From assembly GCA_002269645.1 (NCBI GenBank), contig NIVC01000103.1:803393-867392 (forward strand): a stretch of DNA of 64,000 nt, in the 5' to 3' direction. A program made the translations under genes and the position numbers. Within the stretch, counting starts at the first letter, position 1. Each line of letters begins with the position of its first letter. Below, piece by piece: positions 11,249 to 57,600 of this stretch. Source of the DNA: Macrostomum lignano. Its lineage: Eukaryota. The notes below the pieces were generated by a model. That model was not told the origin of the DNA and ran no database searches. It worked only from the letters and a program-made list of their open reading frames with translations.

Positions 11249-12409
11249 GTCGAATATGAGGGCAATCTGTTTATAAATAAAACCAGAGTTTGAAGTTATC
11301 TGTTGATAGCTCGTATCGAACGCTTAAAATCCCAAAGTTGGTGCATGTTTCCGGGATGTTATTTTTACCACAGACATATAACTCAGGGTTAGATTTTTTA
11401 AAATCTCCGGCTTTTGTACAAGTAACGCACGAGTTTTGAGGGTGACGCATGGTTAAAAACAATTTAGTTTGTTCCAGTCACACCAGAATGGAGTCACACT
11501 ACCATAGCGTACTTAAAATCAATTGTTAATAACGACGAAGCAGTTATTGAAGTTAAAATTGAGCTGACGCCCACCACCAGACTGATAAGAGTTGAGTAGC
11601 GCATGTCGCTAGTAGACTGTGATGAGTCTTGGTGTCCACCTGTTAGTCAACCAGACGGTTTAATAACTGTCTTTCGTCTGACATTTTGTGTATGCTGCAG
11701 TTTTAGGCGGATCAAATTAAATCGTGTTTGAAGTTGAGGAGCTAAATTAAAGAGGTATGAATCGAGCAGTGATCTTCTCCTTCATTAGATGGCTTGACGG
11801 TCACAAAGAAGATAAATGTTGTCTACCGGTACGGTGAAGAATGAGGGGGCTTCGCCCCCAACCCCTTAGTATGATTTCCCATGTACTAAAAATGATATAT
11901 ATTCTAAATTCCTTATGTCTATAACTGTAGCTTACAACTGCGTTGCATTTTATCAGATATATGCAGTATCGTGTACAGATAATAAAACACTAGATATTTC
12001 ACCCTGCATTGAGTAAAGCCATTTTTGTTTATCCGATTGATTGTTTTGTTTATTCGATTGCTCTTTTTGTGATAAATATTCATTGAAATTATAATTGTTT
12101 AAGATTGCTTATACATTGGAATAAATTTTACAATTTTAATACTACTATAGTATATCAAGCTGGCTTCAACCTTCAGTGTTTTTTGTCATGTACAGTCTGT
12201 TATTCAGAGGCTTTGAGGCAAAATTCGCGCTCCGAAACCAGTTACTGCCCGGCTAAACAATGCTACTCTTAGTAGTCAAATGTTCTATAACTGCTTCAGA
12301 GCTGGGGCAGCCAAGTGCTGGATCGGAAATGCGTTTGACTCTCCCAGTTAAACTGGTGGGTTTGTTGGCGATGTCAGCGAAGTTTAACTGTTAGATACAA
12401 ATTTCACCT

Positions 12410-13170
12410 GCTAGATACTGACGTTTACCTGTTAGATACCGATGTCACCTGTTAGATACCTGTTATATACTGATGTCACCTGTTAGATACTAATGTCACC
12501 TGTTAGATACTGATGTCACCTGTTAGATACTGGTGTCACATGTTAGATACTGGTGTCACCTGTTAGATACTGATGTCACACGATAGATACTGATGTCACC
12601 TGTTAGATACTGATGTCACCTGTTAGATACTGATGTCACCTGTTAGATACTGATGTCACCTGTTAGATACTGATGTCACCTGTAAGATACTGGTGTCACC
12701 TGTTAGCCACTGGTGTCACCTGTTAGATACTGATGTCACCTGTTAGATACTGATGTCACACGATAGATACTGATGTCACCTGTTAGATACTGATGTCACC
12801 TGTTAGATACTGATGTCACCTGTTAGATACTGATGTCACCTGTTAGATACTGATGTCACCTGTTAGATACTGATGTCACCTGTTAGATACTGATGTCACC
12901 TGTTAGATACTGATGTCACCTGTTAGCTACTGGTGTCACCTGTTAGATACTGGTGTCACCTGTTAGATACTGATGTCACACGATAGATACTGATGTCACC
13001 TGTTAGATACTGATGTCACCTGTTAGATACTGATGTCACCTGTTAGATACTGATGTCACCTGTTAGATACTGATGTCACCTGTTAGATACTGATGTCACC
13101 TGTTAGATACTGATGTCACCTGTTAGATACCGATGTCAACTGTTAGATACCGGTGTCACCTGTTAGATAC
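12410..13170. repeat. 20-bp minisatellite (TGATGTCACCTGTTAGATAC)
   Basis: Direct observation. Confidence 0.95.
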
Positions 13171-13788
13171 TGATGTAAAGTGTCGCTGGCAAACCCAACC
13201 GACCATTCTCCATCTGTTTCGAGCTCAGCAACACAAAATCCTCAGTTATAAGCTTTTTTTCTGCAAAATATTTGCCATACAATTGCAAACTAAATTGAAA
13301 ATCGTCAGAAAGCTCCGCTTGGTTTCCAGGCCTCAGCCCTGCCCTCCCTCCCCTCTCCATCTCTCTCCCCTCGTGTCTCAGCTGCCGCCCCATTAACCCT
13401 GCCCACTGGCAATGCACTTGCTATGCCGAGCACGCAGCCACAGTCAGCTCTCATTGTTTAACTCAGCAGAGCTCGCAGCATCTCACTGCTCCTGCATCTC
13501 TCACCCCGCTGAGCAGAGCAGCTGCCGGACCCCCTGGCACCCTATCAGGCCTCAAACACAGCCGCTGGGTCAGAGAAGAGAATCGGCCTCAGTCCATTTA
13601 AACAAATTTCTCTGCACAGGGAGAGCTCAGAGATTTCAGTCCGTGACAGCCGGACTTTTGCTGCTGCGGCTGAGCTGGCAGGCAAATTCGCTTGAAGAAG
13701 AGCAAAGCACTCAGTTTGAAGCCGTGTGGAACAGCTGCGGAAGACAGCAGATCGGCAGAGAAGCGCTGCTAGGAGAAGCAGTGTAGCC

Positions 13789-16700
13789 ATGGAAACAGAG
13801 ATGGAGCGGAAGCTGAGAGCGGCGCTGGAGGCTGGAGACAGCGAGGAGCTGCAGCGACTGTGCGGTGAGGTCGGCAGCAACATCCAGCTGGATGTGGGCG
13901 GCTTCGACAAGCAAGAATATCCCTTTGAAGAGCTTCGAATGCCGCTGGCCCATCACGTGGCCTGCAAGCCTGTGAGTTCGTCGTGCCTGGAGCTGCTGAT
14001 TGACAGATTCGGAACCGGCTGTCTGACATATGGAAATGATAGGGACGAGACTCCAGTGCACTTGGCTGCCCAGCATCAGGACGAATCTTGGATGAAGCTG
14101 ATTAAAGAGAAGGGAGGCAGAGGCTGCTTGAGAATTGCCAATAAAGATGGAAAGACAGTCGCTCACTTTGCCGCTATGAACAGAAAAAGCAACTCTTGTC
14201 TGAAGTGGCTGGTGAAGGAGCTCGGCAGCGACTGTCTCACAGTTCCTGACAAATCCGGTTACACGGCCGTCCATTTGGCCGCTAAGCATCAGAGCATCGA
14301 GTCGCTGGAGTGGATCAAGAGACAGATCGGAACTGACTGCTTTCGGCTGAAGGGAGGGTTCTGGAAGAGTACAGCATTTCACTTTGCTGCTGAGAAGTCT
14401 GACAATTCAATGCTGAAGTGGCTGGTGAAGGAGCTCGGCAGCGACTGTCTCACAGTTCCTGACAAATCCGGTTACACGGCCGTCCATTTGGCCGCTAAGC
14501 ATCAGAGCATCGAGTCGCTGGAGTGGATCAAGAGACAGATCGGAACTGACTGCTTTCGGCTGAAGGGAGACTATGATATAACAGCATTTCACTTTGCTGC
14601 TGAGAAGTCTGACAATTCAAATCTGAAGTGGCTGGTGAAGGAGCTCGGCAGCGACTGTCTCACAGTTCCTGACAAAGACGGTGACACGGCCGTCCATTTG
14701 GCCGCTCAGCATCAGGGCATCGAGTCGCTGGAGTGGATCAAGAGACAGATCGGAACTGACTGCTTTCGGCTGAAGGCACGATTCTTGAAGAGAACGGCAT
14801 TTCACTTTGCTGCTGTGAAGTCTGACAATTCAAATCTGAAGTGGCTGGTGAAGGAGCTCGGCAGCGACTGTCTCACAGTTCCTGACAAATCCGGTTACAC
14901 GGCCGTCCATTTGGCCGCTAAGCATCAGAGCATCGAGTCGCTGGAGTGGATCAAGAGACAGATCGGAACTGACTGCTTTCGGCTGAAGGGAGATGATGAT
15001 AGAACAGCATTTCACTTTGCTGCTCAGAAGTCTGACAATTCAAATCTGAAGTGGCTGGTGAAGGAGCTCGGCAGCGACTGTCTCACAGTTCCTGACGAAT
15101 ACGGTTACACGGCCGTCCATTTGGCCGCTCAGCATCAGGGCATCGAGTCGCTGGAGTGGATCAAGAGACAGATCGGAACTGACTGCTTTCGGCTGAAGGG
15201 ATTGTTGGATAGAACAGCATTTCACTTTGCTGCTAAAAAGTCTGACAATTCAAATCTGAAGTGGCTGGTGAAGGAGCTCGGCAGCGACTGTCTCACAGTT
15301 CCTGACGAAGACGGTGACACGGCTGTCCATTTTGCCGCTCTGCATCAGGGCATCGAGTCGCTGGAGTGGATCAAGAGACAGATCGGAACTGACTGCTTTC
15401 GGCTGAAGACAAAGAGTGATAGAACAGCATTTCACTTTGCTGCTAAAAAGTCTGACAATTCAAATCTGAAGTGGCTGGTGAAGGAGCTCGGCAGCGACTG
15501 TCTCACAGTTCCTGACAAATACGGTAACACGGCCGTCCATTCGGCCGCTCAGCATCAGGGCATCGAGTCGCTGGAGTGGATCAAGAGACAGATCGGAACT
15601 GACTGCTTTCGGCTGAAGACAAAGAGTGATAGAACAGCATTTCACTTTGCTGCTAAAAAGTCTGACAATTCAAATCTGAAGTGGCTGGTGAAGGAGCTCA
15701 GCAGCGACTGTCTCACAGTTCCTGACTCACTCGGTGAGACGGCCGTCCATTTGGCCGCTAAGCATCAGAGCATCGAGTCGCTGGAGTGGATCAAGAGACA
15801 GATCGGAACTGACTGCTTTCGGCTGAAGGCACGATTCTTGAAGAGAACGGCATTTCACTTTGCTGCTGTGAAGTCTGACAATTCAAATCTGAAGTGGCTG
15901 GTGAAGGAGCTCGGCAGCGACTGTCTCACAGTTCCTGACAAAGACGGTGACACGGCCGTCCATTGGGCCGCTGAGTGGCAGCCAGTCGGCTCTCTTCAGT
16001 TCATTTTTGACCAAATCGGAGCCGAAATGCTCAGCTTGAAGAACAACAAGGGCGAAACACCGGCTGATCTTGTTGACATTGGGCGGTGGTGCACAGACAA
16101 GTCAGCAAAGCGGGCCTGGATTTCCTCCACGCAGCGGCGGCTCGAAGCCTCTCGGCCTCCCGCTGGCAGCTCAGCGCCGACTGCCGCCTCAGCTGGGTGA
16201 GTCCTGACTGAGAACTGCTGCCTGACACTGAAAATACTGAAAATATTGTTTGGCGAAAATTCATTGCGCTTTGATGATCGGCGCCCTGAAATTCTCGGCA
16301 GCGCCGCAGTCAAGAGAGGGCGTCATGAATGTCAGTGCAGCTCCTCATGGCGCCCCCAACCTTCTCATGGCGCCTCCAATCTCCCCATGGCGCCCCCAAC
16401 CTCCCCATGGCGCCTCCAATCTCCCCATGGCGCCTCCAACCTCCCCATGGCGCCCCCAACCTCCCTATGGCGCCTCCAATCTCCCCATGGCGCCTCCAGT
16501 CTCTTCATGGCGCCTCCAATCTCCCAATGGCGCCTCCAACCTTCTCATGGCGCCTCCAACCTCCCCATGGCGCCTCCAATCTCCCCATGGCGCCTCCAAT
16601 CTCCCCATGGCGCCTCCAATCTCCCTAAAGAGCCCCCAATCTCCTCATGGGCCCCAACCCCCCACCCACAGCTCAATCTGCAGGAGTTTTTAAACACAAA

Positions 16701-19000
16701 GCATCAGCGAGTTCAAGTGCCATCAAACTCTCCGAAGTTTCAAACTGTCCGATTTTAGTAGGAATGTACTTGGTGTGATGTTCAAAATATTGGCTCTTGA
16801 ATGATTTGAGAGCCTCCAATGTCTTCGTGGCGCCGCAATATCCCGATCGCGCCCCCAATGTCCATATAGCGCCACCCATAGCTCAATCTGCAGGGGCTTC
16901 TTATTCACGAAGCATTAGCAGAGTTCAAGTGCCGCCTTGGCGACCCAGACATGTTTAACGGCTCACTCGTAAAACTCTTCCTACAGCGCTGCAGCTCCGC
17001 GTCTCCGCCCACGAGCTCGACGGAGCGTCCAGCTGCCTGGGCCGACTCCGGTCGGACTGCCTGAGGAGACTCGGTGAGAAATGATGAGGCGACAGTTGGT
17101 GAACTCGTCAAAACCTGCAGTCTGAGCGCAGGCAACAAGCCAAAAGGCACCTGGCACTTCATGGCACCCGAGGATGCTCATGGCAGAAGGGTGGTGACGC
17201 AGAAGGGTGGTGACGCAGAAGGGTGGTGACGCAGAAGGGTGGTGACGCAGAAGGGTGGTGACGCAGAAGGGTGGTGACGCAGAAGGGTGGTGACGCAGAA
17301 GGGTGGTGACGCAGAAGGGTGGTGACGCAGAAGGGTGGTGACGCAGAAGGGTGGTGACGCAGAAGGGTGGTGACGCAGAAGGCTGGTGACGCAGAAGGGT
17401 GGTGACGCAGAAGGGTGGTGACGCAGAAGGGTGGTGACGCAGAAGGGTGGTGACGCAGAAGGGTGGTGACGCAGAAGGGTGGTGACGCAGAAGGCTGGTG
17501 ACGCAGAAGGGTGGTGACGCAGAAGGGTGGTGACGCAGAAGGGTGGTGACGCAGAAGGGTGGTGACGCAGAAGGGTGGTGACGCAGAAGGGTGGTGACGC
17601 AGAAGGGTGGTGACGCAGAAGGGTGGTGACGCAGAAGGGTGGTGACGCAGAAGGGTGGTGACGCAGAAGGGTGGTGACGCAGAAGGGTGGTGACGCAGAA
17701 GGCTGGTGACGCAGAAGGGTGGTGACGCAGAAGGGTGGTGACGCAGAAGGGTGGTGACGCAGAAGGGTGGTGACGCAGTAGGCTGAGTGACTCCAAAGTA
17801 CTCAGAAAGCCCCAAGCAACACAAAACTCATCTAATTCCTTCATTTCATGTTTCAGCGCCAAGAAGCAGCTGGACCCCAGCTTCACCGACTGGGACTTCA
17901 TCCTGCAGGACAACAACAAGAAGCAGCTAATCGGCCGTGGTGGATTCGGCAAGGTGTACAAGGCCCTCACAGACCGCAACCAGACGGTGGCTGTCAAGGT
18001 GCTGCCCCTGAGCGGCACCGGCCAATCGGGGAAGCTGCAGAGAGCCGTCGAGATGGAGAAGCGGGGAGTTGAGATCCTCAAGCGACTCTCGCATCCCAAC
18101 ATTCTGCAGTTCCTCAAGTTCGAGCAGAAGTCGGATGGGCTGTACATCTTCACCGAGCTGGTCTCGGGTCACAGCCTCTTTGAGCTGATGCAGCGTCAGA
18201 ACAAGCCTTTTAAGGAGTCCGGGGTCAGGGACTTCTCCAGACAGGTGCGTCTCTGAGTTCTCTGGCACTGCCTGGCATGGGTGGGATCAGTGTGGGATCA
18301 GTGTGGGATCAGTGTGGGATCAGTGTGGGATCAGTGTGGGATCAGTGTGGGATCAGTGTGGGATCAGTGTGGGATCAGTGTGAGATCAGTGTGAGATCAG
18401 TGTGAGATAAGTGCGGGATCAGTGTGGGATCATTGTGGGATCATTGTGGGATCAGTGTGGGTGAAAAATGAATTCATGCATTTTTTTGACTACTCAAAGC
18501 TGCTCCACCTGCAGATCTGCTCAGGCCTGAACTTCCTGCACTGCCAGCCGGAGGGCGCCATCCTGCACCGTGATGTGAATAGCAAGAACGTGATGCTCAG
18601 CAATGAGGGCGTCATCAAGCTGATCGACTTCGGTCTGGCCAAGGAGATCGGGAAGAGCAGCGGCCTGAGCACAGACATCGGGCCGAAAGGCACCACCTAC
18701 TTCATGGCTCCGGAGCTGTTCGACACAGAAGTCCATTCGCTTCCGTACTCAGCCAAGACCGACATGTGGGCCTTCGGCTGCACCGTGTATGAGCTGACGG
18801 CCATGCAGCCTCCTGATGGGGACAGGCCAAGTGAAAGTATTAGCATTCGAAGATTTAGGAAGCAAAATATGCCTCGGATTGCGGACGGGTTCTCAGCCGG
18901 CCTGAAGGACTTCTACCTCAGGTGCGTAGACTATGACCCGAGGAAGCGAGCGGACACCGCGGAGCTGCTGCGGCACAGCTTCCTGAGTGCCTCATCCTGA
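13789..19000 (+). CDS. Ankyrin-repeat protein kinase A (~20 ANK repeats + STE/MAP3K-like kinase domain)
   Basis: Exons 13789-16196, 16987-17073, 17857-18244 and 18515-19000 join in phase (2,2,0) with GT-AG sites. Kinase motifs IGRGGFGKVY, VAVK, HRDVNSKN, DFG, GTTYFMAPE and DMWAFGC. The start could instead be the upstream alternative at 13726. Confidence 0.92.
14200..15990 (+). repeat. Coding tandem array of 8.5 units of 210/213 bp (two ankyrin repeats per unit)
   Basis: GTGGCTGGTGAAGGAGCTC recurs 9 times at ~210-bp spacing. Units are near-identical except in short variable segments. Confidence 0.97.
16340..16655. repeat. 20-bp minisatellite (CTCCCCATGGCGCCTCCAAT) in intron 1 of kinase A
   Basis: Direct observation. 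Confidence 0.9.
17116..17175 (+). pseudogene. Intronic fragment of a paralogous kinase activation segment
   Basis: Translates LSAGNKPKGTWHFMAPE and aligns with LSTDIGPKGTTYFMAPE in exon 4 of the same gene. Confidence 0.7.
17180..17780. repeat. 16-bp minisatellite (GCAGAAGGGTGGTGAC) in intron 2 of kinase A
   Basis: Direct observation. Confidence 0.96.
18280..18460. repeat. 11-bp repeat (GTGTGGGATCA) in intron 3 of kinase A
   Basis: Direct observation. Confidence 0.93.
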
Positions 19001-19069: not shown

Positions 19070-19545
19070 TCTGCTTTTGTTTATCCGATTGCCGTTTTTG
19101 TTTACCTGATTGCTCTTTTTGTTTATCCGATTGCTATTTTTGTTTATCCGATTGCCCTTTTTGTTTATCCGATTGCCCTTTTTGTTTGTTTGATTGCCCA
19201 TTTTGTTTATCCGATTGCCCATTTTGTTTATCCGATTGCCCATTTTGTTTATCCGATATCCCTTTTTGTTTATCTGATTGCTTTTTTGTTTATCCGATTG
19301 CCGTTTTTGTTTACCTGATTGATTGTTTTGTTTATCCGATTGCTATTTTTGTTTATCCGATTGCTTTTTTGTTTATCCGATTGCTATTTTTGTTTATCCG
19401 ATTGCTTTTTTGTTTATCCGATTGCTTTTTTGTTTATCCGATTGACCTTTTTGTTTATTTGATCGCCCGTTTTATTTATTTGATTGCTCTTCTTGTTTAT
19501 CCGATTACTCTTTTTGTTTATCCGATTTACCTTTTTGTTTATCCG
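19070..19545. repeat. ~21-bp degenerate repeat (TTTTTGTTTATCCGATTGCnn)
   Basis: Direct observation. A short relative occurs at ~12020-12070. Confidence 0.9.
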
Positions 19546-33960: not shown

Positions 33961-36324
33961 ACTCATTCTGTTGGTAGCACAATCAAGTTTCCAGTCCCAG
34001 AGTGAGTCGATGGCGGCATGTAAAAAAGCAAGATGAATTACTGTCACTGATAGGGCTAACAAATATACCTGCTCTACTAACAGTAGTAAAAATAGCTTTT
34101 CAGTTCATCTGTTTTAAAATAACAAGTGGTGAGGAAAGCAGGCATCGGACAGATGAAACCAACCTAATTCTCATCTTTCGCTATCGCCTGCTATTTGTTT
34201 TCTGCAACCACTCGCTATATCTTTCGCGTTCAAACAGAAAAACCTTTTCTTAACCAGTTAGTTAGGGGCCAGGATTGAGGACTCCGCGCATACAGTCTAA
34301 TAAGTGCTTGGACAGAGCCATACCTATACCGCCCTACGAGCGTATGCAGGGGTTGCAGAGTAGTTTGCATAGCCACTGTCCATTGACCATAGCTTTTTAT
34401 TTTCAACACTGTCACAAGTTGGTTTATAACTACTGCAGAGTGAGTACAGAAATAAACACAGTCTATTCATCAACCCGTCCGTTTAGAGAAAAACGAGTTT
34501 AGTATATGAGACGTTAGAGCTTTTTATTTACAGAAAACTTTATACTCAATCGTAAAATGAGAAGAAATACGAGTTGTGATTTAAACAAAAAAGACGTTAA
34601 ATGTATTGATAATTAAGCAAAAAGAGAGCTCAGTTAAGATCGTCGCACCTTTTTATTTTGAATTTCGAGTGGCAATTGATGAGCACTGCTTATTGGCAAA
34701 GAATGGTTGTGGAATTAATTTAAAATACGTTCCAGTGAAGTTGAAACACCAGACAGTACACAAAAACACAAAGAAAAAGTGAGCCACAAATTCACGACTT
34801 TGATTCTACTAATGAGGCCGCAACATCAACAACAATAACCCAGCTTTTCAGAATCAATCTCGCGCACAAAAATTTCCTGACAGTGTACCTGTATGTCGAT
34901 TAGACAGGCAGGATTCATATCTTTTTGTTTTCATAATGTAAATTTTACTCGCCGCCAGCAGCTTATTTAGAATCGGATTAATAGAAGAAATTGTTTTAAT
35001 ACCGGCAAACAACATTCGATATCGCGTTGAAGTTGAAATGAGAACTGAATCATCAGGAAATGCTGGCAGCTCTGTGTAGTCTATTCGTCATCAGCCGCAT
35101 GCGCGTTATTTCACCGCCCGTCAGGAACTGGTGCCTCATCAGCTCCAGGGCCGACTGTCTCTTACTGCGGTTTTGAGTCGTGCAGCTGCGGTAGAAATCC
35201 TCCAACTCTTTGGAGCAACCAGGTGGAAGTTTTGGACAACCGTTATTCTTTATCAGCTGGGCTATTGTTAATAAATTAGATGCGCTATGAAACGGCCTCT
35301 GACGGGTGGCCATCTGGTAGACTGAGCAGCCGAACGCCCAGATGTCCGACTCTCTGCTGTACTGAGGCGAGGTGTCAGCCTCGCCAGCTCCCAGCAGCTC
35401 TGGAGCCATGAAGTTATGAGTGCCTCTGGGTGTCTGAGTGCTAGCTAAGTTGTGACTGACTGACAGTTTCAGTTCGATTGAAAGGCCGAAGTCGATCAGC
35501 TTAATTCTCGTGCCTTCGGAAAGCACCATGATGTTGGAGCAGTTGATGTCTCTGTGGATCACGGGCGGACGTCGGCTGTGCATGTAGAGCAGCGCGCTGC
35601 AGATCTGCAAGATGTTCCATTGATTACTGTAGTTTGAACTGGCCCTCTTATTTAAACGAGTCCTGTAAAACCTGTGTAAGCGTGTGCATGAGTACGTTCC
35701 TGCGTACCGTATTGGCGCGCTTGAGCTGTATGTGCTCAGGAGTCAGCGGAACGCGCTGGTTGTGGGAACATGTCGCCGAAGGCGTGATCAAAAGCTCTCC
35801 AGTCAATATTCTAATTTTTTGAAAGCACAGGAAACTTATTCACCTGCTCGCTAAAGTCTCGAATTTTGTTCTCAGGCATTGGAGCGCCGTTAATGAATGT
35901 TTCCAAGGTCTTTCCCTCCAGCAGCTCCATGAACAGAACGATTGTGGCAGGCTCAGTCTGAGCGATGTGAAAGAATCTGACAATGTTTCTGTGCTGCAGT
36001 CGGCACAGGTTCCTCTCGCTCTCGACCGCTTTATCGATCTTTGTACGGTCATGAGCATATTGATCAGCGGTCAATTGACCGACGGGCAGTTTAATAATTT
36101 TCGCAACGCACTGGATGCCTTTGTCGGTAAGGACTTTGTAAACTTCGCCAAAGCCTCCTCTGCCGATGAGGTCACCTACGTCCCAGAGCTCCATGAACGG
36201 CGGGTCTTCGTGTCTGTGTTAATTTGAATTCGAATCGCGTACAATAATAAGCTTTTATTAGTACAGTTTATGATATCTGACTATATGAAGCAGTCCATTG
36301 CCGCTAACCTTGCTCTGTAACATG

Positions 36325-41948: not shown

Positions 41949-44900
41949 CTAGTCCAGCTTAGGCTGCTTAATAAAATGTCCGTCATCAAGAGACAGATTC
42001 ATCAGGCCTCGTTTGTCCAACTTTTTACTGGCCAAGAATTGGTGCTTCATCAGCTCATCCGCTGGCTTGCGCTCGATGCGATTTCTAGCGGTGCACTGGC
42101 TGTAGAAATCCTTCAGCTCAACAGAGCCGCCGTCACGAATAGCGGGGGCTCCGCTTCTTTCGACTCGCACAGCAACTTGAAAGATTGTTGGAACGTCAGC
42201 GAAGGGTCGAGAGCCGGTGGCCATCTGGAAGACCGAGCAGCCGAACGCCCAGATGTCCGACTCTCTGCTGTACTGCGGTCTGTCAGCCTCACCAGCTCCA
42301 AGCAGCTCTGGTGCCATGAAGTTCAAAGTGCCTTCAGGTTTTTGAGTTGTGGCCGAGATGTGGCTGACCGACTGCTCCAGCTTGATTGACAGGCCGAAGT
42401 CGATCAGCTTGATGCGCGTGTTGTCGGCGAGGACAATGATGTTGGAGCAGTTGATGTCTCTGTGGATCACGGGCGGCCGCCGGCTGTGCAGGTAGAGCAG
42501 CGCGCTGCAGATCTGCAAGCGGTCGGTCGACAGTTTTGAATATAAAAAAGTCAACTCAATCCAGGCTTAAAATCCAGAAATTCTCACCTGCTTGCTGAAG
42601 GAACGAACGGCTGCCTCATCCAGCGGCTTGTTGTCGATAAACCTCTCCAAGCTTCGCCCGTCCAGCAGCTCCATGAACACAACGACTGTGGCGGGCTCCG
42701 GCTGAGCCATGTGCAAGAACCTGACGATGTTGGGATGCCGCAGTCGGCACAGGTTTCTCTCGCTCTCAATAGCGCCTTCGATTTTCTTTCTAATAGAATC
42801 CAGCTGGTCCCCGAGGTGCACAGGCAGTTTGAGAGTCTTGGCGGCGCACCTGATGCCCGTATCTGTCAGAACTTCGTGGACTTCGCCGAAACCTCCCCGA
42901 CCAATAAGTCGACCGGTTTCCCAGTCCTCTAAGAATGGCGGATGGTCGTCCTCTCTGAAAGTCCGCAGTTAAAATGGCGAATTCCTGCATAGTTATACTT
43001 AAAAGTCGTCAAAGAGTCGCCCAAGAACCACTTTGAAGCGTTTTATTGCCTGCGACTTTGAAGCGACTCTGGGGTCGTAAAGTGGTAAGGCGTGCTGTAG
43101 AGTCACTGAGTTGTGTTTGAAGCGCATTTGCGTCGCTTGATGAATCAGAGTCGCATCTCAAGCGAAAGTTAAGCGCCAACACAACGATTCTTGGACGACT
43201 CTTTCACGACTCTTTTACGATTCTACAACTGACGTGACGCGCTTGTGACGCAACCTTTGAGTCGCTAAAAAGTCACAGGAGTTGCTCAAGAGTCGCTAGA
43301 GTCACTAGAGAGTTGTTTGGAATGACTCTTTTACGATTCTACAACTGACGTGACGCGCTTGTGACGCAACGTTTGAGTCGCTAAAAAGTCACAGGAGTTG
43401 CTCAAGGGTCGCTAGAGTCACTAGAGAGTTGTTTGGAATGACTCTTTTACGATTCTACAACTGACGTGACGCGCTTGTGACGCAACGTTTGAGTCGCTAA
43501 AAAGTCACAGGAGTTGCTCAAGGGTCGCTAGAGTCACTAGAGAGTTGTTTGGAATGACTCTTTTACGATTCTACAACTGACGTGACGCGCTTGTGACGCA
43601 ACGTTTGAGTCGCTAAAAAGTCACAGGAGTTGCTCAAGGGTCGCTAGAGTCACTAGAGAGTTGTTTGGAATGACTCTTTAGCAATTCTTGCCATAGAAAA
43701 TTTTTTAATGGCATGCTCTACGAAAAATCCGTAGCAAGGAATGCCCACGGACTCTCCGGTGTAGAATGTGGAGCACTTCAACTGTGAATGCCCCGCCTTT
43801 ACTCAGTACATTTTCAGGCCCCCGAGAATCTCTGCCAGCTTGTCCGCTACCTAAGGGCTACCGGGCGAGCGACCATCCACCTTTCTGGACTCTCCGGAGG
43901 GGGACCTCACTGCGGACACCGGCACCACCGGATCTCCCGGCTTCGACCCCTTAGGGTATGCGCATATTTTTGGCTTTAATAGTCAGATTGACTTACGGCA
44001 GTTCAAGGGGCTCATCAAAGTAGACTTTGGTTTCGCACCTGAAACAATGATTAATAGATATAATAGAACGAAAGTATTAAGATTAATTATAATAGTAATA
44101 TTTTATTAAGAGTACACCTTGCCCTAATGAGCAGATTGGAAGGCTGCATACGGCTGTTCAGTCCAAGGACTGGTGGGTCGCCACACACAGCCTCAATTAT
44201 CCCAGCTAATGCTGGCACCCATTTTACAGCTGGGTGAACTGAAGCAATGCAGAGTTAAGTGTCTTGCTCAAGGACACAAAGTGTTCCGAGTGCGTCGAGA
44301 ATCGAACGCGGGACCTTTTAGTCGTAAGTGCGACGCTTAACCCGGTTGTCGGCAATTGTTTTACAGATGCATTACAGATCCATACTACTCAAAAACACCG
44401 ATTAATGTATCTGTTTTTTACTTCAAGGGCCAGATAAAAAGTTTTGTAATGAGATAAGATGAGAGGAGAGAGGAGATGAGATGAGAGGAGAGAGGAGATG
44501 AGACAAGAGAGGAGATGAGAGGAGATAGATGAGATGAGAGAAGAGAGGAGATAAGATGAGAGGAGAGAGATAAGATGAGAGGAGAGAGGAGATAAGATGA
44601 GAGGAGATAAGATAAGATGAAAGGAGAGAGATAAGATGAGAGGAGAGAGATAAGATGAGAGGAGAGAGATGAGATGAGAGGAGAGAACTTAGAATAGACA
44701 CAAACCTTGAGCAGGCCGCATTGCTATTGTAAAGTTTCAAAGGACCCGAAGGTCAGATAGAGAGGCTTTGCGGGCCGCTTGTGGCTCGCGGGCCGGAGGT
44801 TGCGGACCCCTGCTCTAAGCACTAAGGCTACAAGCCATACTACTCAAAAACACAGAGTAAATGCATCTGCAAGAAACCTCACCCACGCAGCAGCGCTTCC

Positions 44901-46860
44901 AGTTCAGCTTTGCCATTCTCCCTGGCCAGGTCTCGAGCCGTCCTGCCCAGCTGGTCCTCCAGGCTCCAGTCCGAGCCGGAGTCCAACAGAACCCGACAGA
45001 CAGCGGTGGCGGCAGACGGGGACGCTGAGATGGTGGCCCTCATCAACGGCGAGACTGATTGCTCATCCTTGGCATTGACGGAAGCTCCAGAGTGCAGCAG
45101 GGCGGAGGCTGCGACAGAGTTGCCGCTCCAGGCAGCGTGATGCAGGCAGCTCTCGGACCACATGTCAGCACAGGTGGGATCTGCCAGCTGCAGCAGCTGT
45201 TCCCACAAATATTCGTCACTGCAGTTGCTGTTGCCAGCTGCCCACATCAGCGCCGTGCGGCCGTATTTGTCCGGCAAGTCGTAGCCCTCTTGGGTGGCCA
45301 GTTGTCGCAAGCCGGCCGAGTTGCCAGACGTGGCCAGCTTCAGTTGCTTTCTATTGGCTTTTTCCTGCAAAAGCAGGAGGTAAATTATATGCAATTAACA
45401 ATTGAGCCTTGCAGTCATTGTTTTTATACTGATCCCACTGTGTTCCTCTTGTTTGAAGGGGCGAATCAGATTTTTTTCATTGGGGGAGGGGCGCCAGCAC
45501 CAGAGGCGCCAGCACCAGAGGCGCCAGCACCAGAGGCGCCAGCACCAGAGGCGCCAGCACCAGAGGCGCCAGCACCAGAGGCGCCAGCACCAGAGGCGCC
45601 AGCACCAGAGGCGCCAGCACCAGAGGCGCCAGCACCAGAGGCGCCAGCACCAGAGGCGCCAGCACCAGAGGCGCCAGCACCAGAGGCGCCAGCACCAGAG
45701 GCGCCAGCACCAGAGGCGCCAGCACCAGAGGCGCCAGCACCAGAGGCGCCAGCACCAGAGGCGCCAGCACCAGAGGCGCCAGCACCAGAGGCGCCAGCAC
45801 CAGAGGCGCCAGCACCAGAGGCGCCAGCACCAGAGGCGCCAGCACCAGAGGCGCCAGCACCAGAGGCGCCAGCACCAGAGGCGCCAGCACCAGAGGCGCC
45901 AGCACCAGAGGCGCCAGCAACAGAGGCGCCAGCACCAGAGGCGCCAGCACCAGAGGCGCCAGCACCAGAGGCGCCAGCACCAGAGGCGCCAGTACCAGAG
46001 GCGCCAGCACCAGAGGCGCCAGCACCAGAGGCGCCAGCACCAGAGGCGCCAGCACCAGAGGCGCCAGTACCAGAGGCGCCAGCACCAGAGGCGCCAGTAC
46101 CAGAGGCGCCAGCACCAGGGGCGCCAGCACTAGGGGCTTCACACTGTAGTCGCTGTACTCACCTGATCTGTCAGACCGGAGATGTAGCCTTCGTTAGTCA
46201 CGACCAGACGCATCTCCCTGCAACGCCAATTCACAGATAATGAGATGCACCCTAGATTCCTGTGCTTGAAAGTAAAAGTTTCAACTCTCACCGCTCAATA
46301 TCGCTAGCCAGCTCGGAGTGGTCACCGAGTCTCGCCAAATTCAACGCTGTCCGACCATCGACATCTTTGAGTCCGAGCAGGCGCTCTCTCTCAGAGTTTC
46401 CGTACTTCTCGCACTCGTTGAACTGCTTCTGCCTCAGCAGGTGCAGCAGGTGCTTGGCGCATCTCCAGCTGCCGGTCCGCGCCGCCTCCATCAGCGGAGT
46501 GGCGCCCCGCCGGTTCTGCAGCCACTTCGCATCGAACGACAGCAGCGTCAGCAGCCGCAGGTGGTCCCGACGGGCTGCCAGGTGCGCGGCTGTGTCGCCC
46601 GAGCCGTCAGTCGACTTTGGGTTGGCGCCCAGCTCGAACAAGTACATGACGCACTTCTCAGCCTGAATGGGCGTCTCCGGAGCGTCGGCAACCAGCATGA
46701 GAACGGTTCGGTGAGCGGCATCAGTATTGAAGGTCACCAGCTGGCGCGTTGCCAGCCGCCGCATCTGAGCAAAGTCGCCTCGAATGACGAGCTGGGAGAG
46801 ACGCAGGAGAGCAGTCTCAAACTCGATATGATCCAAGGCCAGTTGAAGAAGTGACTGCAT
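41949..46860 (-). CDS. ANK-ANK-kinase paralogue C (intact)
   Basis: Exons 46860-46292, 46217-46163, 45364-44883, 42954-42588 and 42512-41949 join in phase (2,0,2,0). Ankyrin motifs GDTAAHLAA, GATPLMEAA and GRTALMWAA. Kinase motifs IGRGGFGEV, HRDINCSN, DFG and FMAPE. Confidence 0.9.
43210..43680. repeat. 116-bp tandem repeat, ~4 copies
   Basis: TTCTACAACTGACGTGACGCG starts at 43221, 43337, 43453 and 43569. Confidence 0.95.
44125..44350 (-). mobile_element. tRNA-derived SINE (copy 3)
   Basis: Reverse complement of the same body and B-box region. Confidence 0.85.
44426..44812 (-). mobile_element. hAT-derived element end with internal GA-rich expansion
   Basis: Minus-strand terminus CAGGGGTCCGCAACCTCCGGCCCGCG, with GA-rich repeat at 44450-44690. 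Confidence 0.7.
45490..46135. repeat. 15-bp minisatellite (GCACCAGAGGCGCCA) in intron 2 of paralogue C
   Basis: Direct observation. Confidence 0.97.
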
Positions 46861-54605: not shown

Positions 54606-57600
54606 TAGCAAAGTACCTTTTGCACTTTTTCAATCCGAGCCGGCTGACTGAGATCAGTGTCCGGGATGCACAGGCTCACTTGATACTGGCTCTTGTCCTC
54701 GTCTGCAATTTGTAGCGAGGCAAAAATACCTGTATCTACTAAATATATCCATGTAAAACATATTGAGTGATGGAATAGCGGTCTCACGAGGCAGTGGATC
54801 CTTGAAATAGATCCAGACATCTTGACCACCGCACAAGCTGCCTTCCGGAGGCAGCACCGAGTCAATGTTGAGCTTCACCAGCTGCTCTGCGGTTTGATGA
54901 AGACAATTGAAAATAATCAAGTAATTAAGAGAATCTATAAGCTATAGCAGTTTAGACTAGAAGAACTCACTGATATCGGAAACAACATCTGTGACTGCAT
55001 TTGCAAATGGATGAGGACTGGCCTGCAGAGCCCCATTCTTGTCAACAAAGTGCAGCTGGAAAGCCAGTCTCAACTGGTTCAGGTTTCTAGACGTGTACTT
55101 CACGTCTTGCAAGTTCTCTGCAAATGGTTAGCGATTTGGTAACATAAATCTGCATGGGTTATGACGTACATCAGCCCTAACAGGTCATGACCTTAGCCCC
55201 GAGTTTAGTGACCTCACATGCACTTCAATGACCTTTGTAGCATTTTTAGCTAGAGGCAGTACTGCCCATTTCACCGACTCCCCTGAGCAGGCACCACAGA
55301 CCAAGTAATATAACTAGACTGCGCACAGGGGAGAGAGGGGTGTGTCAGTTTCAGTGAAGAAAAAATGGTCCCCCGCGAAACCCCTCTCCGTGATCGATAA
55401 TGGAACTAAAGTTGAGGATTTCCCCACTGGCGCTGCCCTTATACAAGCATTAAGCACCCTATACTGCCTGGCAAATTTTATTCATGGGCACTCTATAGGA
55501 TTCATATGATGCTGCATGTTCGAAAAAAAATTAGCATATATTATTATTTACTTTTCAAGTGGATAAAATGTTAGTTTCAGTAATGAAAAAAATTGACAAC
55601 GAAAGAGAAATTATTGACGAAAACAGCGAGAAGAAAAACTAAATAGCTTGTAATTAAGTTAGCCTTAAGCATGCAAAAGTTCAATTAGCAATGGCTTAAC
55701 AAAATAAGATTAGAAAAGTCCAACAGCAAGGAAATTTTAGCATGCAATATGTTCACAAGTTAAGAAAAATAGCTGTTCTCAGCAGTTTCTGCCTCCTTCC
55801 AGACTTGACAGTGGAGAGATCCTTGGCTACCTTCTTCATGCGCACGTTGATAAAAAACTGGCTGAGAACTCGAATTAGGTGCAGCTTGTGAGATTCAATG
55901 CCGATGCTGGAGACAACCGAATGAGAATCCAGATCACCGAATAGATTGGCAGACAGCCGCAGAATCTCCTGGATGGCGAGTGCGCTCCGAAAGCTGCAGT
56001 CATAGGAGGATCGCCGGATAACATACTCTGCATGCAGAAACACTCGGAATGCATCAGCGCTGGGAAACACAAGTCCTCCGCGGCCTTCGCTATTCGTTGA
56101 ATTCTTTTGCAGGGCAAGGGAGGACGGAAGGTGCGAATCACCAGAATCAGATAAGCTTGAGCTGCCAAGCAGGGCGCAGCGACACGGTGCACAGTCCAGG
56201 ATCTTCAGCACACTGCGAACCACAGCTCCTCCTATATAGTGCACAACGGACTGGCACATCTCGCAAGTTGACAAGGAGCTGCAGTGCTGAATCGAATCCA
56301 CACGCTTTCCAACTGAGTTCAGCACAGGCATAGGACTCCGTAGAAGTTGAGAACTGGAATCCGCTGATGACTGCAAACAAAGTAGAGACAGTTGTACAGT
56401 CTCATCCTGCTGTCTGACGTTGGCACCTGCTGATGGAATGATTCCAGTGCCTGCGTGGACCAGCAGCTGGCGAAAAGCAAATCGGAATTGTCTCGGAGTC
56501 GGGTTGTGATTCCATCCGTTGCGAAGCCGAATAGCGTTAAAAAACAATTCGAGAAAATCTTGGGACAACTTGTATGTCAACAGGAAAAAAAGTCACCATT
56601 TGAAAAAAGAAACTGAGCGAGTGACATCACTGCATGGCTGTTGCTGATAAAGCCGAGAAAGCCAGTTTTCTTTTGAGTGGAAATGATTTTCTGACTGCTG
56701 ACTGTTTCCAGGCTCGCAAGCATACTGATGCAGTCATTGAAGAGAAGGTCTTCCATTTTTGCTCATTGCCAGCTCTCAGGCCCATCTTCAATTTGTAGTT
56801 CACAAGCTGTTTTGAATTGAATGCATCGAACAGATCGTTGATGCGTTCGACAAAGTCTGCGGTTACGAGTACATCAGGATGCTCGAATCCAGGGAATTGC
56901 TTTTGATGGACCCAACGCAGTGAGTCGGCAACAGACTTGCTGAAGAGCTGTGCGGCGAGATAGACCTTCATTTTTAGATTGCTGAAATTAATGTGAAACC
57001 TTCTCAGCTTATTGCCCAGGCGAAGGCCGTGGCGCTCTTGAACTTCCCGTAGAAGGCTCACGTACTGCAATTCAATTCTCCCTCTACCTGGCCACACAAT
57101 CGTTCCAAGTGCTTGCCACTGGTTTCGCAGCAGCTTGAGCATGTGAGCCGCATCCAGAAAAGTTGCAACAGATATCGTCGGGTCGCACGGGTGCTGGAAC
57201 GAGGCCCTAATTTCATCAATTACACCAAGACTTGCGCCAAGGATTCCCATTGCTCTGATATTGTGCTGCGTTCCGTCACACGTGAACGATGCCGCAATGA
57301 TGCCAATCTGATACAAGCGTGCAATAGCCTCTTCAATTACATTAAACAGAAAGTCACTCTTGACGCCATTGACTAAGAAGTAACCAAGAGGCAGCTTCCA
57401 GTTGCTTTTGAGTCCAACGGCCATAATTACAAGCGAAGAGGTGGCCTCTTCTTCAGTCACTGCTCCGTCGCCCTTGTCCACGTAGCCAAAGAATTTGCCT
57501 TCACAGGAATTCCATTCGATCAGCTTCTCAAGCGACATTTCATCCACATTACAGTAAGCAAATGCTTCTGCACCAGGCGAGTTGCGTCGTCTTGAAAGCT

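Follow-up and report, generated by a model that had tools for sequence, protein, structure and literature searches.

Ankyrin arrays with a hypervariable binding groove joined to kinase domains: a putative intracellular receptor family in the flatworm Macrostomum lignano

The window analysed in this study is a stretch of 64,000 nucleotides from a contig of Macrostomum lignano (NIVC01000103.1). A gene of three exons is predicted on its forward strand at positions 13789-19000, with a product of 1093 aa, and a tandem array of ankyrin repeats makes up the greater part of its first exon. Exon 1, coding from the first ATG (13789-16196), lies within the open reading frame 13726-16200, ends at a donor site in phase 2 (G|GTGAGT) and starts with the motif MERKL, which is also the start of the annotated paralogues P0003 and P0004. 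It is composed of an N-terminal cap (13789-14199; about 137 aa, with two helices and about three degenerate ankyrin repeats), the hypervariable tandem array itself (14200-15972), and a C-terminal capping repeat with a Ser/Pro/Ala-rich linker (15973-16196), which is predicted to be disordered (pLDDT below 50 for residues 790-806, AlphaFold2). The N-terminal cap is situated outside the tandem array and shows 73-91% protein identity to those paralogues that have such a cap.

Exon 2 (17857-18244) encodes the N-lobe of a protein kinase, in which the glycine loop (GRGGFGKV) and the lysine of VAVK are recognised (Pfam Pkinase, E 1.8e-12), and its protein identity to most paralogues amounts to 92-97%. 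The C-lobe with HRDVNSKN, DFG and MAPE is encoded together with the stop codon by exon 3 (18515-19000; Pfam Pkinase, E 6.9e-32). The preliminary description of this DNA had proposed that the ankyrin array is fused to a kinase, and the gene model bears this out: the splice sites are canonical, the frame is kept across the junctions, the Pkinase profile matches both exons, and the annotated paralogue proteins have the same two exon junctions. Intron 1 (16197-17856) and intron 2 (18245-18514) are both bounded by GT..AG. Minisatellites were observed in both, with periods of 20 nt (16341-16650) and 16 nt (17183-17791) in the former and 11 nt (18281-18461) in the latter. Judged from its sequence the window protein contains neither a signal peptide nor a membrane segment and is probably intracellular. 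The window gene is absent among the annotated M. lignano proteins which were returned by protein searches.

The array consists of eight full units and a partial ninth (15889-15972). The units start at 14200, 14413, 14623, 14836, 15046, 15256, 15466, 15676 and 15889, which corresponds to spacings of 213, 210, 213, 210, 210, 210, 210 and 213 nt, and every unit is in frame with the open reading frame of exon 1. Each comprises 70 or 71 codons and represents two ankyrin repeats. Tandem Repeats Finder reports the same structure (14199-15972, period 210, 8.4 copies, 93% matches). The assignment to the ankyrin repeat proteins is based on the Pfam profiles Ank_4 (E 2.2e-76) and Ank_2 (E 6.4e-72) and on the regular helix pairs in the AlphaFold2 model of the array protein (pLDDT 83.6); PDB sequences matching the array are those of NOMPC, ankyrin-1/2 and DARPins. 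In summary, the encoded protein is a solenoid of about 21 ankyrin repeats made of near-identical two-repeat modules, with a disordered linker and a kinase domain of the STE group (MAP3K/ASK1-like).

By sequence, the solved structures closest to the kinase domain are those of MAP3K5 (ASK1), MST3/4, STK25 and SLK (E about 1e-32 to 1e-33, best 4e-33). The best Foldseek matches are ASK1 chains, with target-normalised TM-scores of 0.82-0.88 and identities of 28-30% among the ASK1 chains listed. According to these matches in sequence and structure, the catalytic domain is closest to STE-group kinases and MAP3K-like. Although ASK1 and STE20-group kinases are the best matches in sequence and structure, only the catalytic domain is common at about 30% identity; the flanking regulatory regions of ASK1 are absent from the flatworm protein, whose N-terminal partner is the ankyrin array instead. 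An orthologue of ASK1/MAP3K5 was rejected as an explanation, since the identity is only 28-30%, ankyrin repeats take up the first 800 residues, and the protein has no region beyond its kinase domain. The window copy contains GRGGFGKV, VAVK, HRD, DFG and MAPE, but its catalytic loop is atypical (HRDVNSKN versus HRDIKSSN in most paralogues). The position of the HRDxK lysine is occupied by Asn, with a Lys two residues later, and without the catalytic-loop lysine this particular copy may be a weak or altered kinase.

Within the window the eight units show a mean protein identity of 87.6% over about 570 residues and 93% identity in DNA. They were described earlier as nearly base-identical and yet sharply different at two short segments, and the numbers agree with that: the nucleotide identity is 99.2% outside 13 codons versus 63.5% inside them, and 28 of the 33 variable columns (out of 213) fall within these 13 codons (hypergeometric p = 4e-21). 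The strings given earlier for the two segments were reproduced letter for letter, and so was the recurrence of variants in non-adjacent units (segment 2 in units 3 and 8, segment 1 in units 3 and 9). The statement of the same description that changes fall mainly in codon positions 1 and 2 did not hold, because the columns split 12/10/11 over positions 1/2/3, so that positions 1 and 2 do not exceed the share of two-thirds that chance alone would give. What stands out within the window is that nearly every change alters a residue: 15 of the 17 variable codons change the amino acid, and silent variation is found only at codons 23 and 58.

A genome search for paralogues with the constant unit, which had been suggested at the outset, revealed that it belongs to a superfamily of dozens of loci and not to a single gene. 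There are 112 matches to the window unit in at least about 39 further places on 21 contigs with 87-97% nucleotide identity, and the paralogous arrays have 2-14 units. Sister subfamilies carry near-identical units of their own; for a sister-subfamily unit 1245 first-look candidates with open frames of up to 1688 aa were obtained. The assembly comprises 764 Mb and was built with Canu on PacBio, Illumina and 454 data. The line behind it has additional copies of chromosomes and is highly redundant, and 180 Mb of the DV1 assembly lie in blocks of at least 95% identity. The locus counts overstate the gene numbers, because the DV1 assembly is partly redundant. All close protein relatives returned by the protein searches are from M. 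lignano, and members of this large gene family have so far been found only in this species.

For the statistics 20 paralogue loci and the window were used, which gives 21 loci with 83 distinct units. N-terminal cap, array and C-terminal cap are all present at each of the 20 loci, and most of these have the kinase exons as well. Several paralogues are pseudogenes or interrupted by transposons. The paralogue proteins are those annotated in GenBank for the Mlig_3_7 assembly on the basis of a genome-guided transcriptome assembly, which speaks for transcription of these paralogues. The identifiers of the family genes were not found in a full-text literature search, and no description of the array-kinase family was found in the literature on Macrostomum ankyrin and on hypervariable ankyrin or concerted evolution. 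The Logan transcript contigs SRR28338163/4 represent a conventional ankyrin-kinase, 80% identical to M. lignano P0022, and are uninformative on hypervariable arrays.

Arrays of one kind are combined with alternative outputs, as the comparison of the loci strongly indicates. In P0023, L025 and L034 the window-type array is joined to a second type of kinase. An array of a sister subfamily is found in P0130 together with a caspase (Peptidase_C14, E 9.5e-42, QACRG motif), and the array type of P0130 is joined to a kinase in P0015. No caspase domain was detected by Pfam in the window gene, nor was one found in the 20 paralogue loci.

Over the 83 units, codons 18, 19, 21, 29, 54, 55 and 65 were classified as hypervariable and codons 26, 30, 32, 52, 53, 56, 57, 62 and 71 as moderately variable. 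In DARPins, Binz et al. (2003) reportedly randomised positions 2, 3, 5, 13, 14 and 33. The paratope of a DARPin is made up of its randomised surface positions (PMC8683736). When the unit is set against a DARPin consensus, each of the seven hypervariable codons coincides with position 2, 3, 5 or 13. Position 14 corresponds to unit codon 30, which varies slightly, while the residue is invariant at position 33 (codons 51 and 16); positions 1, 4 and 10 of the repeat vary in addition. In the AlphaFold2 model the variable residues of both repeats occupy the loop that precedes helix 1 and the C-terminal end of that helix, whereas helix 2 and a short third helix are invariant; this mapping to the surface uses secondary structure and alignment register only. 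The variable residues had been expected on the ankyrin binding surface rather than at the back or inside the core, and that surface is where both the model and the DARPin register place them. The scaffold of the module is constant, silent sites included, while about seven residues of the canonical ankyrin ligand-binding groove are effectively randomised. The possibility that adjacent repeats diverge merely to prevent misfolding was rejected, as the differences are on the binding surface and not spread through the repeat.

The framework of the units shows a pS of 0.037 and a pN of 0.018 (83 distinct units, 21 loci), and with a pN/pS of 0.5 it is under purifying selection. At the seven hypervariable codons pN reaches 0.49, which is 13 times the framework pS and 21 times with Jukes-Cantor correction. 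The diversity at codon positions 1/2/3 is 0.61/0.45/0.30 in the hypervariable codons and 0.022/0.017/0.029 in the framework. By parsimony 28-40 nonsynonymous changes are found per hypervariable codon, which is 8-12 times the synonymous rate, although recombination inflates such tree-based counts. Per-site binomial tests gave p < 0.01 only at codons 19 and 21 and have low power with few silent sites per codon; because the per-site tests are underpowered, weight was put on the pooled synonymous rate and on the diversity by codon position. All of these tests are counting methods. Altogether, the data strongly indicate positive diversifying selection on the groove codons, in line with what had been expected for the variable sites.

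A local mutator is unlikely, because silent sites situated between the variable codons do not rise above background. The third positions of the interleaved codons 20, 22, 28, 60, 63 and 66 show no excess diversity, and those of the hypervariable codons 21 and 29 remain at background (0.048 and 0.024) next to saturated first positions (0.58 and 0.53). Local hypermutation was set aside for the same behaviour of the silent positions and since all four bases take part. Beside segment 2 the silent diversity is somewhat raised, with third-position values of 0.24 at codon 51 and 0.28 at codon 58.

The codon data also bear on the suspicion that the array is the functionless product of a minisatellite-prone genome, in which recent slippage or unequal exchange multiplied a unit whose variable surface sites merely drift. 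The window and the introns of the gene are indeed full of minisatellites, the family is young (pS between loci 0.04-0.19) and some of its copies are pseudogenes. In addition, the caps have a pN/pS of about 1 or more, with a pS of 0.090 and a pN of 0.087 for the N-terminal cap and a pN of 0.096 and a pS of 0.043 for the C-terminal cap and linker part between loci. However, drift can neither produce a nonsynonymous diversity which is 13 times the synonymous diversity of neighbouring codons nor leave the third positions of codons 21 and 29 at background beside saturated first positions. Purifying selection on the framework, frames that stay open across arrays of up to 14 units among the 20 loci and over 1688 aa elsewhere, and the finding that in each of two subfamilies the variable sites fall on the known binding surface speak against it as well. 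We regard the functionless array as largely refuted and as very improbable.

The units are shuffled within the family. Among the 83 units there are 43 variants of segment 1 and 44 of segment 2, which occur in 79 distinct combinations, and identical segment variants are found newly combined at up to 7 loci. The loci L027 and L031 have an identical tract of 535 nt in common although their flanks are only 85-94% identical, which indicates gene conversion. L030 and L031 are near-identical duplicates with flanks of 99.7-100% identity and differ in the number of units, which indicates gain or loss of units. Both gene conversion, between units and between loci, and unit gain and loss are strongly indicated, and the earlier suggestion of diversification by unequal crossover or gene conversion gains support. 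Compared across paralogous loci the arrays are not invariant, and of the refuting conditions named at the outset, those examined here (placement of the residues, selection, invariance of the array) all turned out in favour of the earlier interpretation. Framework sequences are separated by a nucleotide distance of 0.017 inside arrays and of 0.023 across loci. For the kinase exons pS between loci is 0.186 in exon 3 and 0.058 in exon 2. Because the framework pS of 0.037 contrasts only modestly with the C-terminal cap (0.043) and with kinase exon 2, the entire family is young, and the likeness of the units has other causes besides homogenisation.

Cassette-type diversification is known from lamprey VLRs and from trypanosome antigen switching. 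A comparable dedicated mechanism, either targeted hypermutation or copying of cassettes into an expressed copy, would find its raw material in the genome-wide pool of interchangeable units, the mosaic segments and the conversion tract, and the raised silent diversity beside segment 2 would fit to it. All data, however, are germline sequence of one assembly, silent diversity between the segment-1 codons does not exceed background, the changes are not limited to one base type, and the loci are arrays with both caps and mostly with kinase exons instead of bare donor cassettes. We give a mechanism of this kind only a very slim chance.

Least credible of all is an artefact of assembly or polishing, by which reads of different copies were collapsed or cross-corrected into near-identical units and mosaic tracts. 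The hybrid build from a redundant genome with extra chromosome copies invites this suspicion, and consensus polishing could in principle homogenise repeats. But at 20 independent loci the variation follows the codons and preserves the frame, whereas errors of sequencing or consensus would be mostly indels and randomly placed. Independently annotated proteins match the arrays exactly (P0003 that of L035, P0004 those of L032 and L033), and arrays of 0.4-3 kb are well within the PacBio read length.

Variable recognition by repeats is known from LRRs in plant and animal NLRs, TLRs and lamprey VLRs, and from WD, ANK and TPR repeats in fungal and bacterial NLRs. The present family gives the impression of a so far undescribed group of variable intracellular receptors in an animal. 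We consider it probable that the arrays belong to a receptor family with a variable groove and a kinase, which is under diversifying selection and is shaped by gene conversion and alternative outputs. Extrapolating from the sequences, the window protein would bind variable ligands and signal through its kinase. Each protein of the family would act as a sensor in the cytosol and recognise with its groove a ligand of its own, a protein or peptide that changes fast; binding would bring the kinase or caspase domains together, and their assembly could lead to a MAP-kinase-type or cell-death response. The family might represent a germline-encoded repertoire of variable receptors, most plausibly directed against non-self or selfish elements. 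More tentatively, we propose a repertoire of dozens of intracellular ankyrin receptors in which capture of a ligand by the groove directly activates the fused MAP3K-like kinase or caspase against pathogens or selfish elements, as a NOD-less animal counterpart of fungal and bacterial NLR repeats; this full version is possible, but we would not yet count on it. In a still bolder version the genomic arrays may also serve as donors for somatic cassette exchange.

Diversifying selection alone does not name the opponent. The groove might instead track fast-evolving endogenous partners, either proteins of reproduction and sexual conflict or of transposons, in which case the proteins would be adaptors that target substrates for the kinase or caspase. 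Over half the genome consists of repeats, 21% are LTR retrotransposons, and transposon ORFs are found next to or within several loci of the family as well as in the window. M. lignano is an outcrossing hermaphrodite, and reproduction-related genes of the genus are reported to evolve rapidly (PMC7336406). On the other hand, an output through a kinase or caspase is more in keeping with the signalling of stress and death than with a part in reproduction, and no family member was found in two supplementary files of a re-analysis study of neoblasts and germline, which is weak evidence. Endogenous partners are in our opinion unlikely, but deserve to be taken seriously.

Innate immune recognition in flatworms is poorly understood. 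If the receptor interpretation is true, the family suggests how flatworms sense non-self, and a hypervariable ankyrin repertoire wired to a kinase or caspase in a bilaterian would be a new receptor design. M. lignano is transparent and gene knockdown is established. Transgenesis is established, too (PMC5730564). In a transparent animal with transgenesis and knockdown the receptor hypothesis is directly testable. The family is also a clean natural data set, in which gene conversion, unequal exchange and diversifying selection act jointly inside one exon.

A close parallel is found in fungi. The ANK, TPR and WD repeats of fungal NLRs (HET-E/D/R, NWD family) are near-identical, variable in number and exchanged within and between members, they are under positive selection at a handful of positions on the concave binding surface, and numerous alternative effector domains are found attached to them (Dyrka et al. 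2014, PMC4986451). High internal conservation, defined there by an identity above 85% from repeat to repeat across 100 residues or more, applies to only 0.8% of the metazoan ANK, TPR and WD repeats (PMC4986451). The window array reaches this degree of conservation with 87.6% protein identity over about 570 residues. The flatworm family shares with the fungal proteins the near-identity of repeats, differences in repeat number and exchange within and between members (among paralogous loci of one assembly), positive selection on the ligand-binding surface (by counting methods) and alternative effectors. In contrast to the fungal proteins, the repeating unit is an ankyrin pair, the host is an animal, and the N-terminal array is fused straight to an STE-group kinase or a caspase without NACHT or NB-ARC. 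Membership in the NLR/STAND NTPases was rejected, as there was no NACHT or NB-ARC Pfam match in the window protein, P0015, P0023, P0122 and P0130.

RNase L acts in innate immunity, where it dimerises and becomes active when its ankyrin repeats bind a ligand. It resembles the flatworm protein in that a single cytosolic polypeptide carries an N-terminal ankyrin domain and, after it, a protein-kinase fold, and it appears among the whole-architecture Foldseek matches. However, its nine repeats are neither near-identical nor hypervariable, the sequence identity is 15-18%, and the flatworm kinase keeps the VAVK, HRD, DFG and APE motifs. The RNase L family was rejected, since the window protein has no KEN ribonuclease domain and ends 3-4 residues past the kinase domain.

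Animal kinases with ankyrin repeats include ILK and TNNI3K (N-terminal repeats) and ANKK1/RIPK4 and DAPK1 (C-terminal repeats), which belong to the TKL or CAMK groups and have few, divergent repeats. Ankyrin and kinase in one protein are common to them and the flatworm family, whose best matches are STE-group kinases and whose repeats are numerous, near-identical and hypervariable. Platyhelminth ANK-caspases join an ankyrin pro-domain to a caspase, an arrangement specific to flatworms and typical of the parasitic ones, and a caspase with a kinase-like pro-domain was described for M. lignano (Krasovec et al. 2024, PMC11463336). The paralogue P0130 is likewise a caspase with an ankyrin array, a likeness in domain combination. 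That paper is silent on near-identical or hypervariable repeats (PMC11463336), and the window gene has a kinase and no caspase.

If true, the family is a natural equivalent of the principle of DARPin libraries, that is a constant framework with a randomised paratope. In both, a self-compatible consensus framework is kept constant and diversity sits at defined surface positions; in the flatworm array, positions 1, 4 and 10 vary as well, and the DARPin positions 14 and 33 vary little or not at all. The flatworm array differs in being natural and in having about 21 repeats versus 4-6. Its two-repeat module consists of 35 and 35 or 36 residues with an extra short helix, and its B repeat lacks the glycine of GxTPLH and carries a loop of variable length.

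Tandem Repeats Finder detects an array of period 210 at 14199-15972 (8.4 copies, 93% matches). With the first 24 nt of the unit as anchor, units start at 14200, 14413, 14623, 14836, 15046, 15256, 15466, 15676 and 15889, and all nine starts are in frame with the long ORF 13726-16200. Each unit has a length of 70 or 71 codons and corresponds to two ankyrin repeats, here called A and B. Repeat finding, frame and unit comparison confirm the array of the preliminary description, whose residue strings for two short variable stretches per unit (segments 1 and 2) match exactly those re-derived from the window units. In the eight full window units 33 of 213 nucleotide columns are variable, and 28 of these fall within 13 codons (hypergeometric p = 4e-21); identity is 63.5% inside these codons versus 99.2% outside, and the residue changes in 15 of the 17 variable codons. 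The earlier statement that changes affect mainly codon positions 1 and 2 has to be dropped, as the split of 12/10/11 over positions 1/2/3 is not distinctive.

The gene is encoded on the forward strand by three exons. Exon 1 (13789, the first ATG, to 16196; donor G|GTGAGT) is all ankyrin, and exons 2 (17857-18244, preceded by the acceptor tttcag) and 3 (18515-19000, preceded by ctgcag) together form a protein kinase domain, both according to Pfam. Both junctions preserve the frame and the predicted product comprises 1093 aa. The junctions recur in annotated paralogue proteins ('...TAASAGAKKQLDPSF...', '...FSRQICSGLNFLH...'), which are taken from the GenBank annotation of the Mlig_3_7 assembly (line DV1), derived from a genome-guided transcriptome assembly. 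Minisatellites with 11-40-nt units lie on both sides of the gene and fill its two introns (12388-13176, 16341-16650, 17183-17791, 18281-18461, 19075-19545 and many others).

What had been described as a single array-kinase gene turned out, by genome and protein searches, to be one member of a larger superfamily with alternative effector domains. Closely related proteins were found exclusively in M. lignano. A 423-nt double-unit query against the genome (764 Mb, 5269 contigs; the window lies on contig C103) gave 112 matches of 87-97% identity, which fall at about 39 other places spread over 21 contigs. Twenty of these places were fetched and make up, together with the window, the 21 loci of the locus statistics. 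The fetched arrays contain 2-14 units, and all these loci share N-cap, array and C-cap except L028, which is without the N-cap; most also possess both kinase exons. Four carry a stop or frameshift within a unit, and three are followed by transposon ORFs. In L037 and L039, ORFs resembling by eye a non-LTR retrotransposon endonuclease and reverse transcriptase follow the C-cap, in the place normally taken by intron 1 and the kinase exons; L029 has other large TE-like ORFs downstream, likewise read by eye. Three near-duplicate locus pairs among the fetched loci were to be expected, because redundancy of the assembly is known. A sister subfamily is built from a near-identical 70/71-residue unit of its own (LKWLVNECGTDCLSVRDQQGNTPVHLAAW...), whose variable residues all lie in the second repeat. 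The search with this unit yielded 1245 first-look candidates with open frames reaching 1688 aa, which points to a superfamily of many dozens of loci. The 1688-aa frame, at C759:354280-358908 on the reverse strand, contains roughly 22 two-repeat units and is far longer than any fetched array of the window gene's own subfamily (subfamily 1).

Diversity was analysed in 83 distinct units from the 21 loci. The 55 framework codons show a pS of 0.037 and a pN of 0.018. The pN rises to 0.14 in nine moderately variable codons and to 0.49 in the seven hypervariable codons 18, 19, 21, 29, 54, 55 and 65; pS was not used for these two classes. The ratio of hypervariable pN to framework pS is thus 13, and 21 with Jukes-Cantor correction. 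Silent diversity is not raised at the interleaved codons 20, 22, 28, 60, 63 and 66, and at codons 21 and 29 the first position is saturated and the third at background, which argues for selection on the residue rather than a local mutator. Nucleotide diversity over codon positions 1/2/3 is 0.61/0.45/0.30 in hypervariable and 0.022/0.017/0.029 in framework codons. On a tree, parsimony counts 28-40 nonsynonymous changes at each hypervariable codon and puts them at 8-12 times the synonymous rate of the pooled codons, values which are inflated by recombination; the per-site binomial test of these codons is weak. Between window and paralogues the caps evolve fast (pN/pS about 1.0 for the N-cap, about 2.2 for C-cap plus linker), and the kinase exons are constrained between loci (0.34 and 0.48).

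The AlphaFold2 model of the window protein, built from a 23-sequence family alignment (mean pLDDT 83.6, pTM 0.44), shows an unbroken ankyrin solenoid to about residue 787, a disordered linker (790-806) and a kinase fold. In repeat A, codons 18, 19 and 21 are placed in the loop before helix 1 and codons 29 and 30 at the C-terminal end of that helix. In repeat B, codons 52-57 lie in the loop before helix 1, codon 62 within it and codon 65 directly after it. Neither helix 2 nor a short additional helix varies in the model overlay. Alignment to a DARPin consensus matches codons 18, 19, 21 and 29 with positions 2, 3, 5 and 13 of one repeat and codons 54, 55, 57 and 65 with these four positions in the following one; all site placements rest on model secondary structure and alignment register. 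DARPin libraries, as Binz and co-workers are said to have described in 2003, were randomised at positions 2, 3, 5, 13, 14 and 33.

Segment 1 occurs in 43 variants and segment 2 in 44, which combine to 79 unit types among the 83 units. Common variants are found in up to seven loci in differing combinations. The framework distance between loci (0.023) is nearly as small as that within arrays (0.017; permutation p < 0.0005), and silent divergence between loci is largest in kinase exon 3 (0.186), followed by the N-cap (0.090), exon 2 (0.058) and the C-cap (0.043). L027 (contig C1040) and L031 (C1041) are perfectly identical over 535 nt, a stretch comprising the two final units and the C-cap amid flanks of 85-94% identity; this is the signature of inter-locus gene conversion. 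L030 (C1041:8000-17999) and L031 (C1041:34000-43999) form an inverted segmental duplication, in which one copy has an additional unit, and its unit 2 carries a 1-nt frameshift. The different unit numbers despite flanks of 99.7-100% identity indicate a recent gain or loss of a unit.

The arrays are joined to different output domains. The subfamily-1 array precedes a second kinase type (40-48% identical) in P0023, L025 and L034. The array of the sister subfamily is combined with a kinase in P0015 and with a caspase in P0130 (BOX15_Mlig018347g1; Peptidase_C14, E 9.5e-42, HG and QACRG motifs), in whose subfamily the second repeat varies at two loop residues, at one site within helix 1 (F/C/W/K/R/H/L) and at the residue that follows this helix. 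A survey of lophotrochozoan caspases (Krasovec et al. 2024, PMC11463336) described ANK-caspases as flatworm-specific and noted that one M. lignano caspase has a kinase-like pro-domain; repeat hypervariability is not mentioned there. In the more distant member P0011 (BOX15_Mlig002250g2), ankyrin repeats of the conventional kind precede a tandem of two kinase domains of one type.

The window kinase is nearest to ASK1/MAP3K5 and STE20-type kinases (E about 4e-33 to solved structures), with Foldseek target-normalised TM-scores of 0.82-0.88 and 28-30% identity over the listed ASK1 chains. The catalytic loop (about 18563-18586, exon 3) reads HRDVNSKN, in contrast to HRDIKSSN in most paralogues. Asn thus replaces the conserved Lys two residues past the catalytic Asp, and a Lys is present at +4, where tyrosine kinases carry Arg. 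Judged from this motif, the activity of the window copy is uncertain. The conserved Lys is also absent in L038 (HRDVNCNN) and in the kinases of the second type (HRDINCSN).

The family combines a constant scaffold carrying a hypervariable canonical binding surface, unit exchange with copy-number change, and swapping of the output domain. This evolutionary and architectural account of the superfamily is in our view probable. The earlier interpretation of an intracellular variable-recognition receptor wired to a kinase withstood all tests run (paralogue search, site diversity and model mapping); a role as immune-type receptor is put forward tentatively. The array proteins would be cytosolic sensors, in which ligand binding to the array would draw the effector domains together, and the ligands could stem from pathogens or transposons or could themselves be rapidly evolving worm proteins. 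The nearest precedent (Foldseek) is RNase L, in which a kinase fold comes after an ankyrin sensor; its ankyrin repeats bind the ligand, and the protein thereby dimerises and becomes active in innate immunity. Strongly conserved repeats of the ANK, TPR and WD types in fungal NOD-like receptors display the same pattern as the flatworm family (Dyrka et al. 2014, PMC4986451). Unlike these, the flatworm array has a STE-type kinase or a caspase as its direct fusion partner; Pfam found no NOD domain in the window protein or in the paralogues P0015, P0023, P0122 and P0130. The literature searched contained neither a description of the superfamily nor expression or phenotype information on the family.

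Two more kinase genes are located on the reverse strand of the window, at 42033-42941 and 35122-36206. They are 69% and 61% identical, respectively, to the second kinase type of P0023, L025 and L034, and no hypervariable array precedes them within the window. An ORF upstream of the former (46288-46857, reverse strand) encodes ankyrin repeats of the conventional, non-repetitive kind (Ank_2, E 4e-14), and both may belong to one further ANK-kinase gene. P-element/THAP9-like transposase ORFs at 55753-58393 (reverse strand) comprise the N and C domains of a TNP-like RNase H, a GTP-binding insertion, a Tnp_P_element HTH and a weak THAP domain. The whole window contains about 30 minisatellite arrays. 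Related 20-21-nt units occur at separate sites (CTGTTAGA... at 12388 and 20868), and the 21-mers at 9027 and 25541 are reverse complements of each other.
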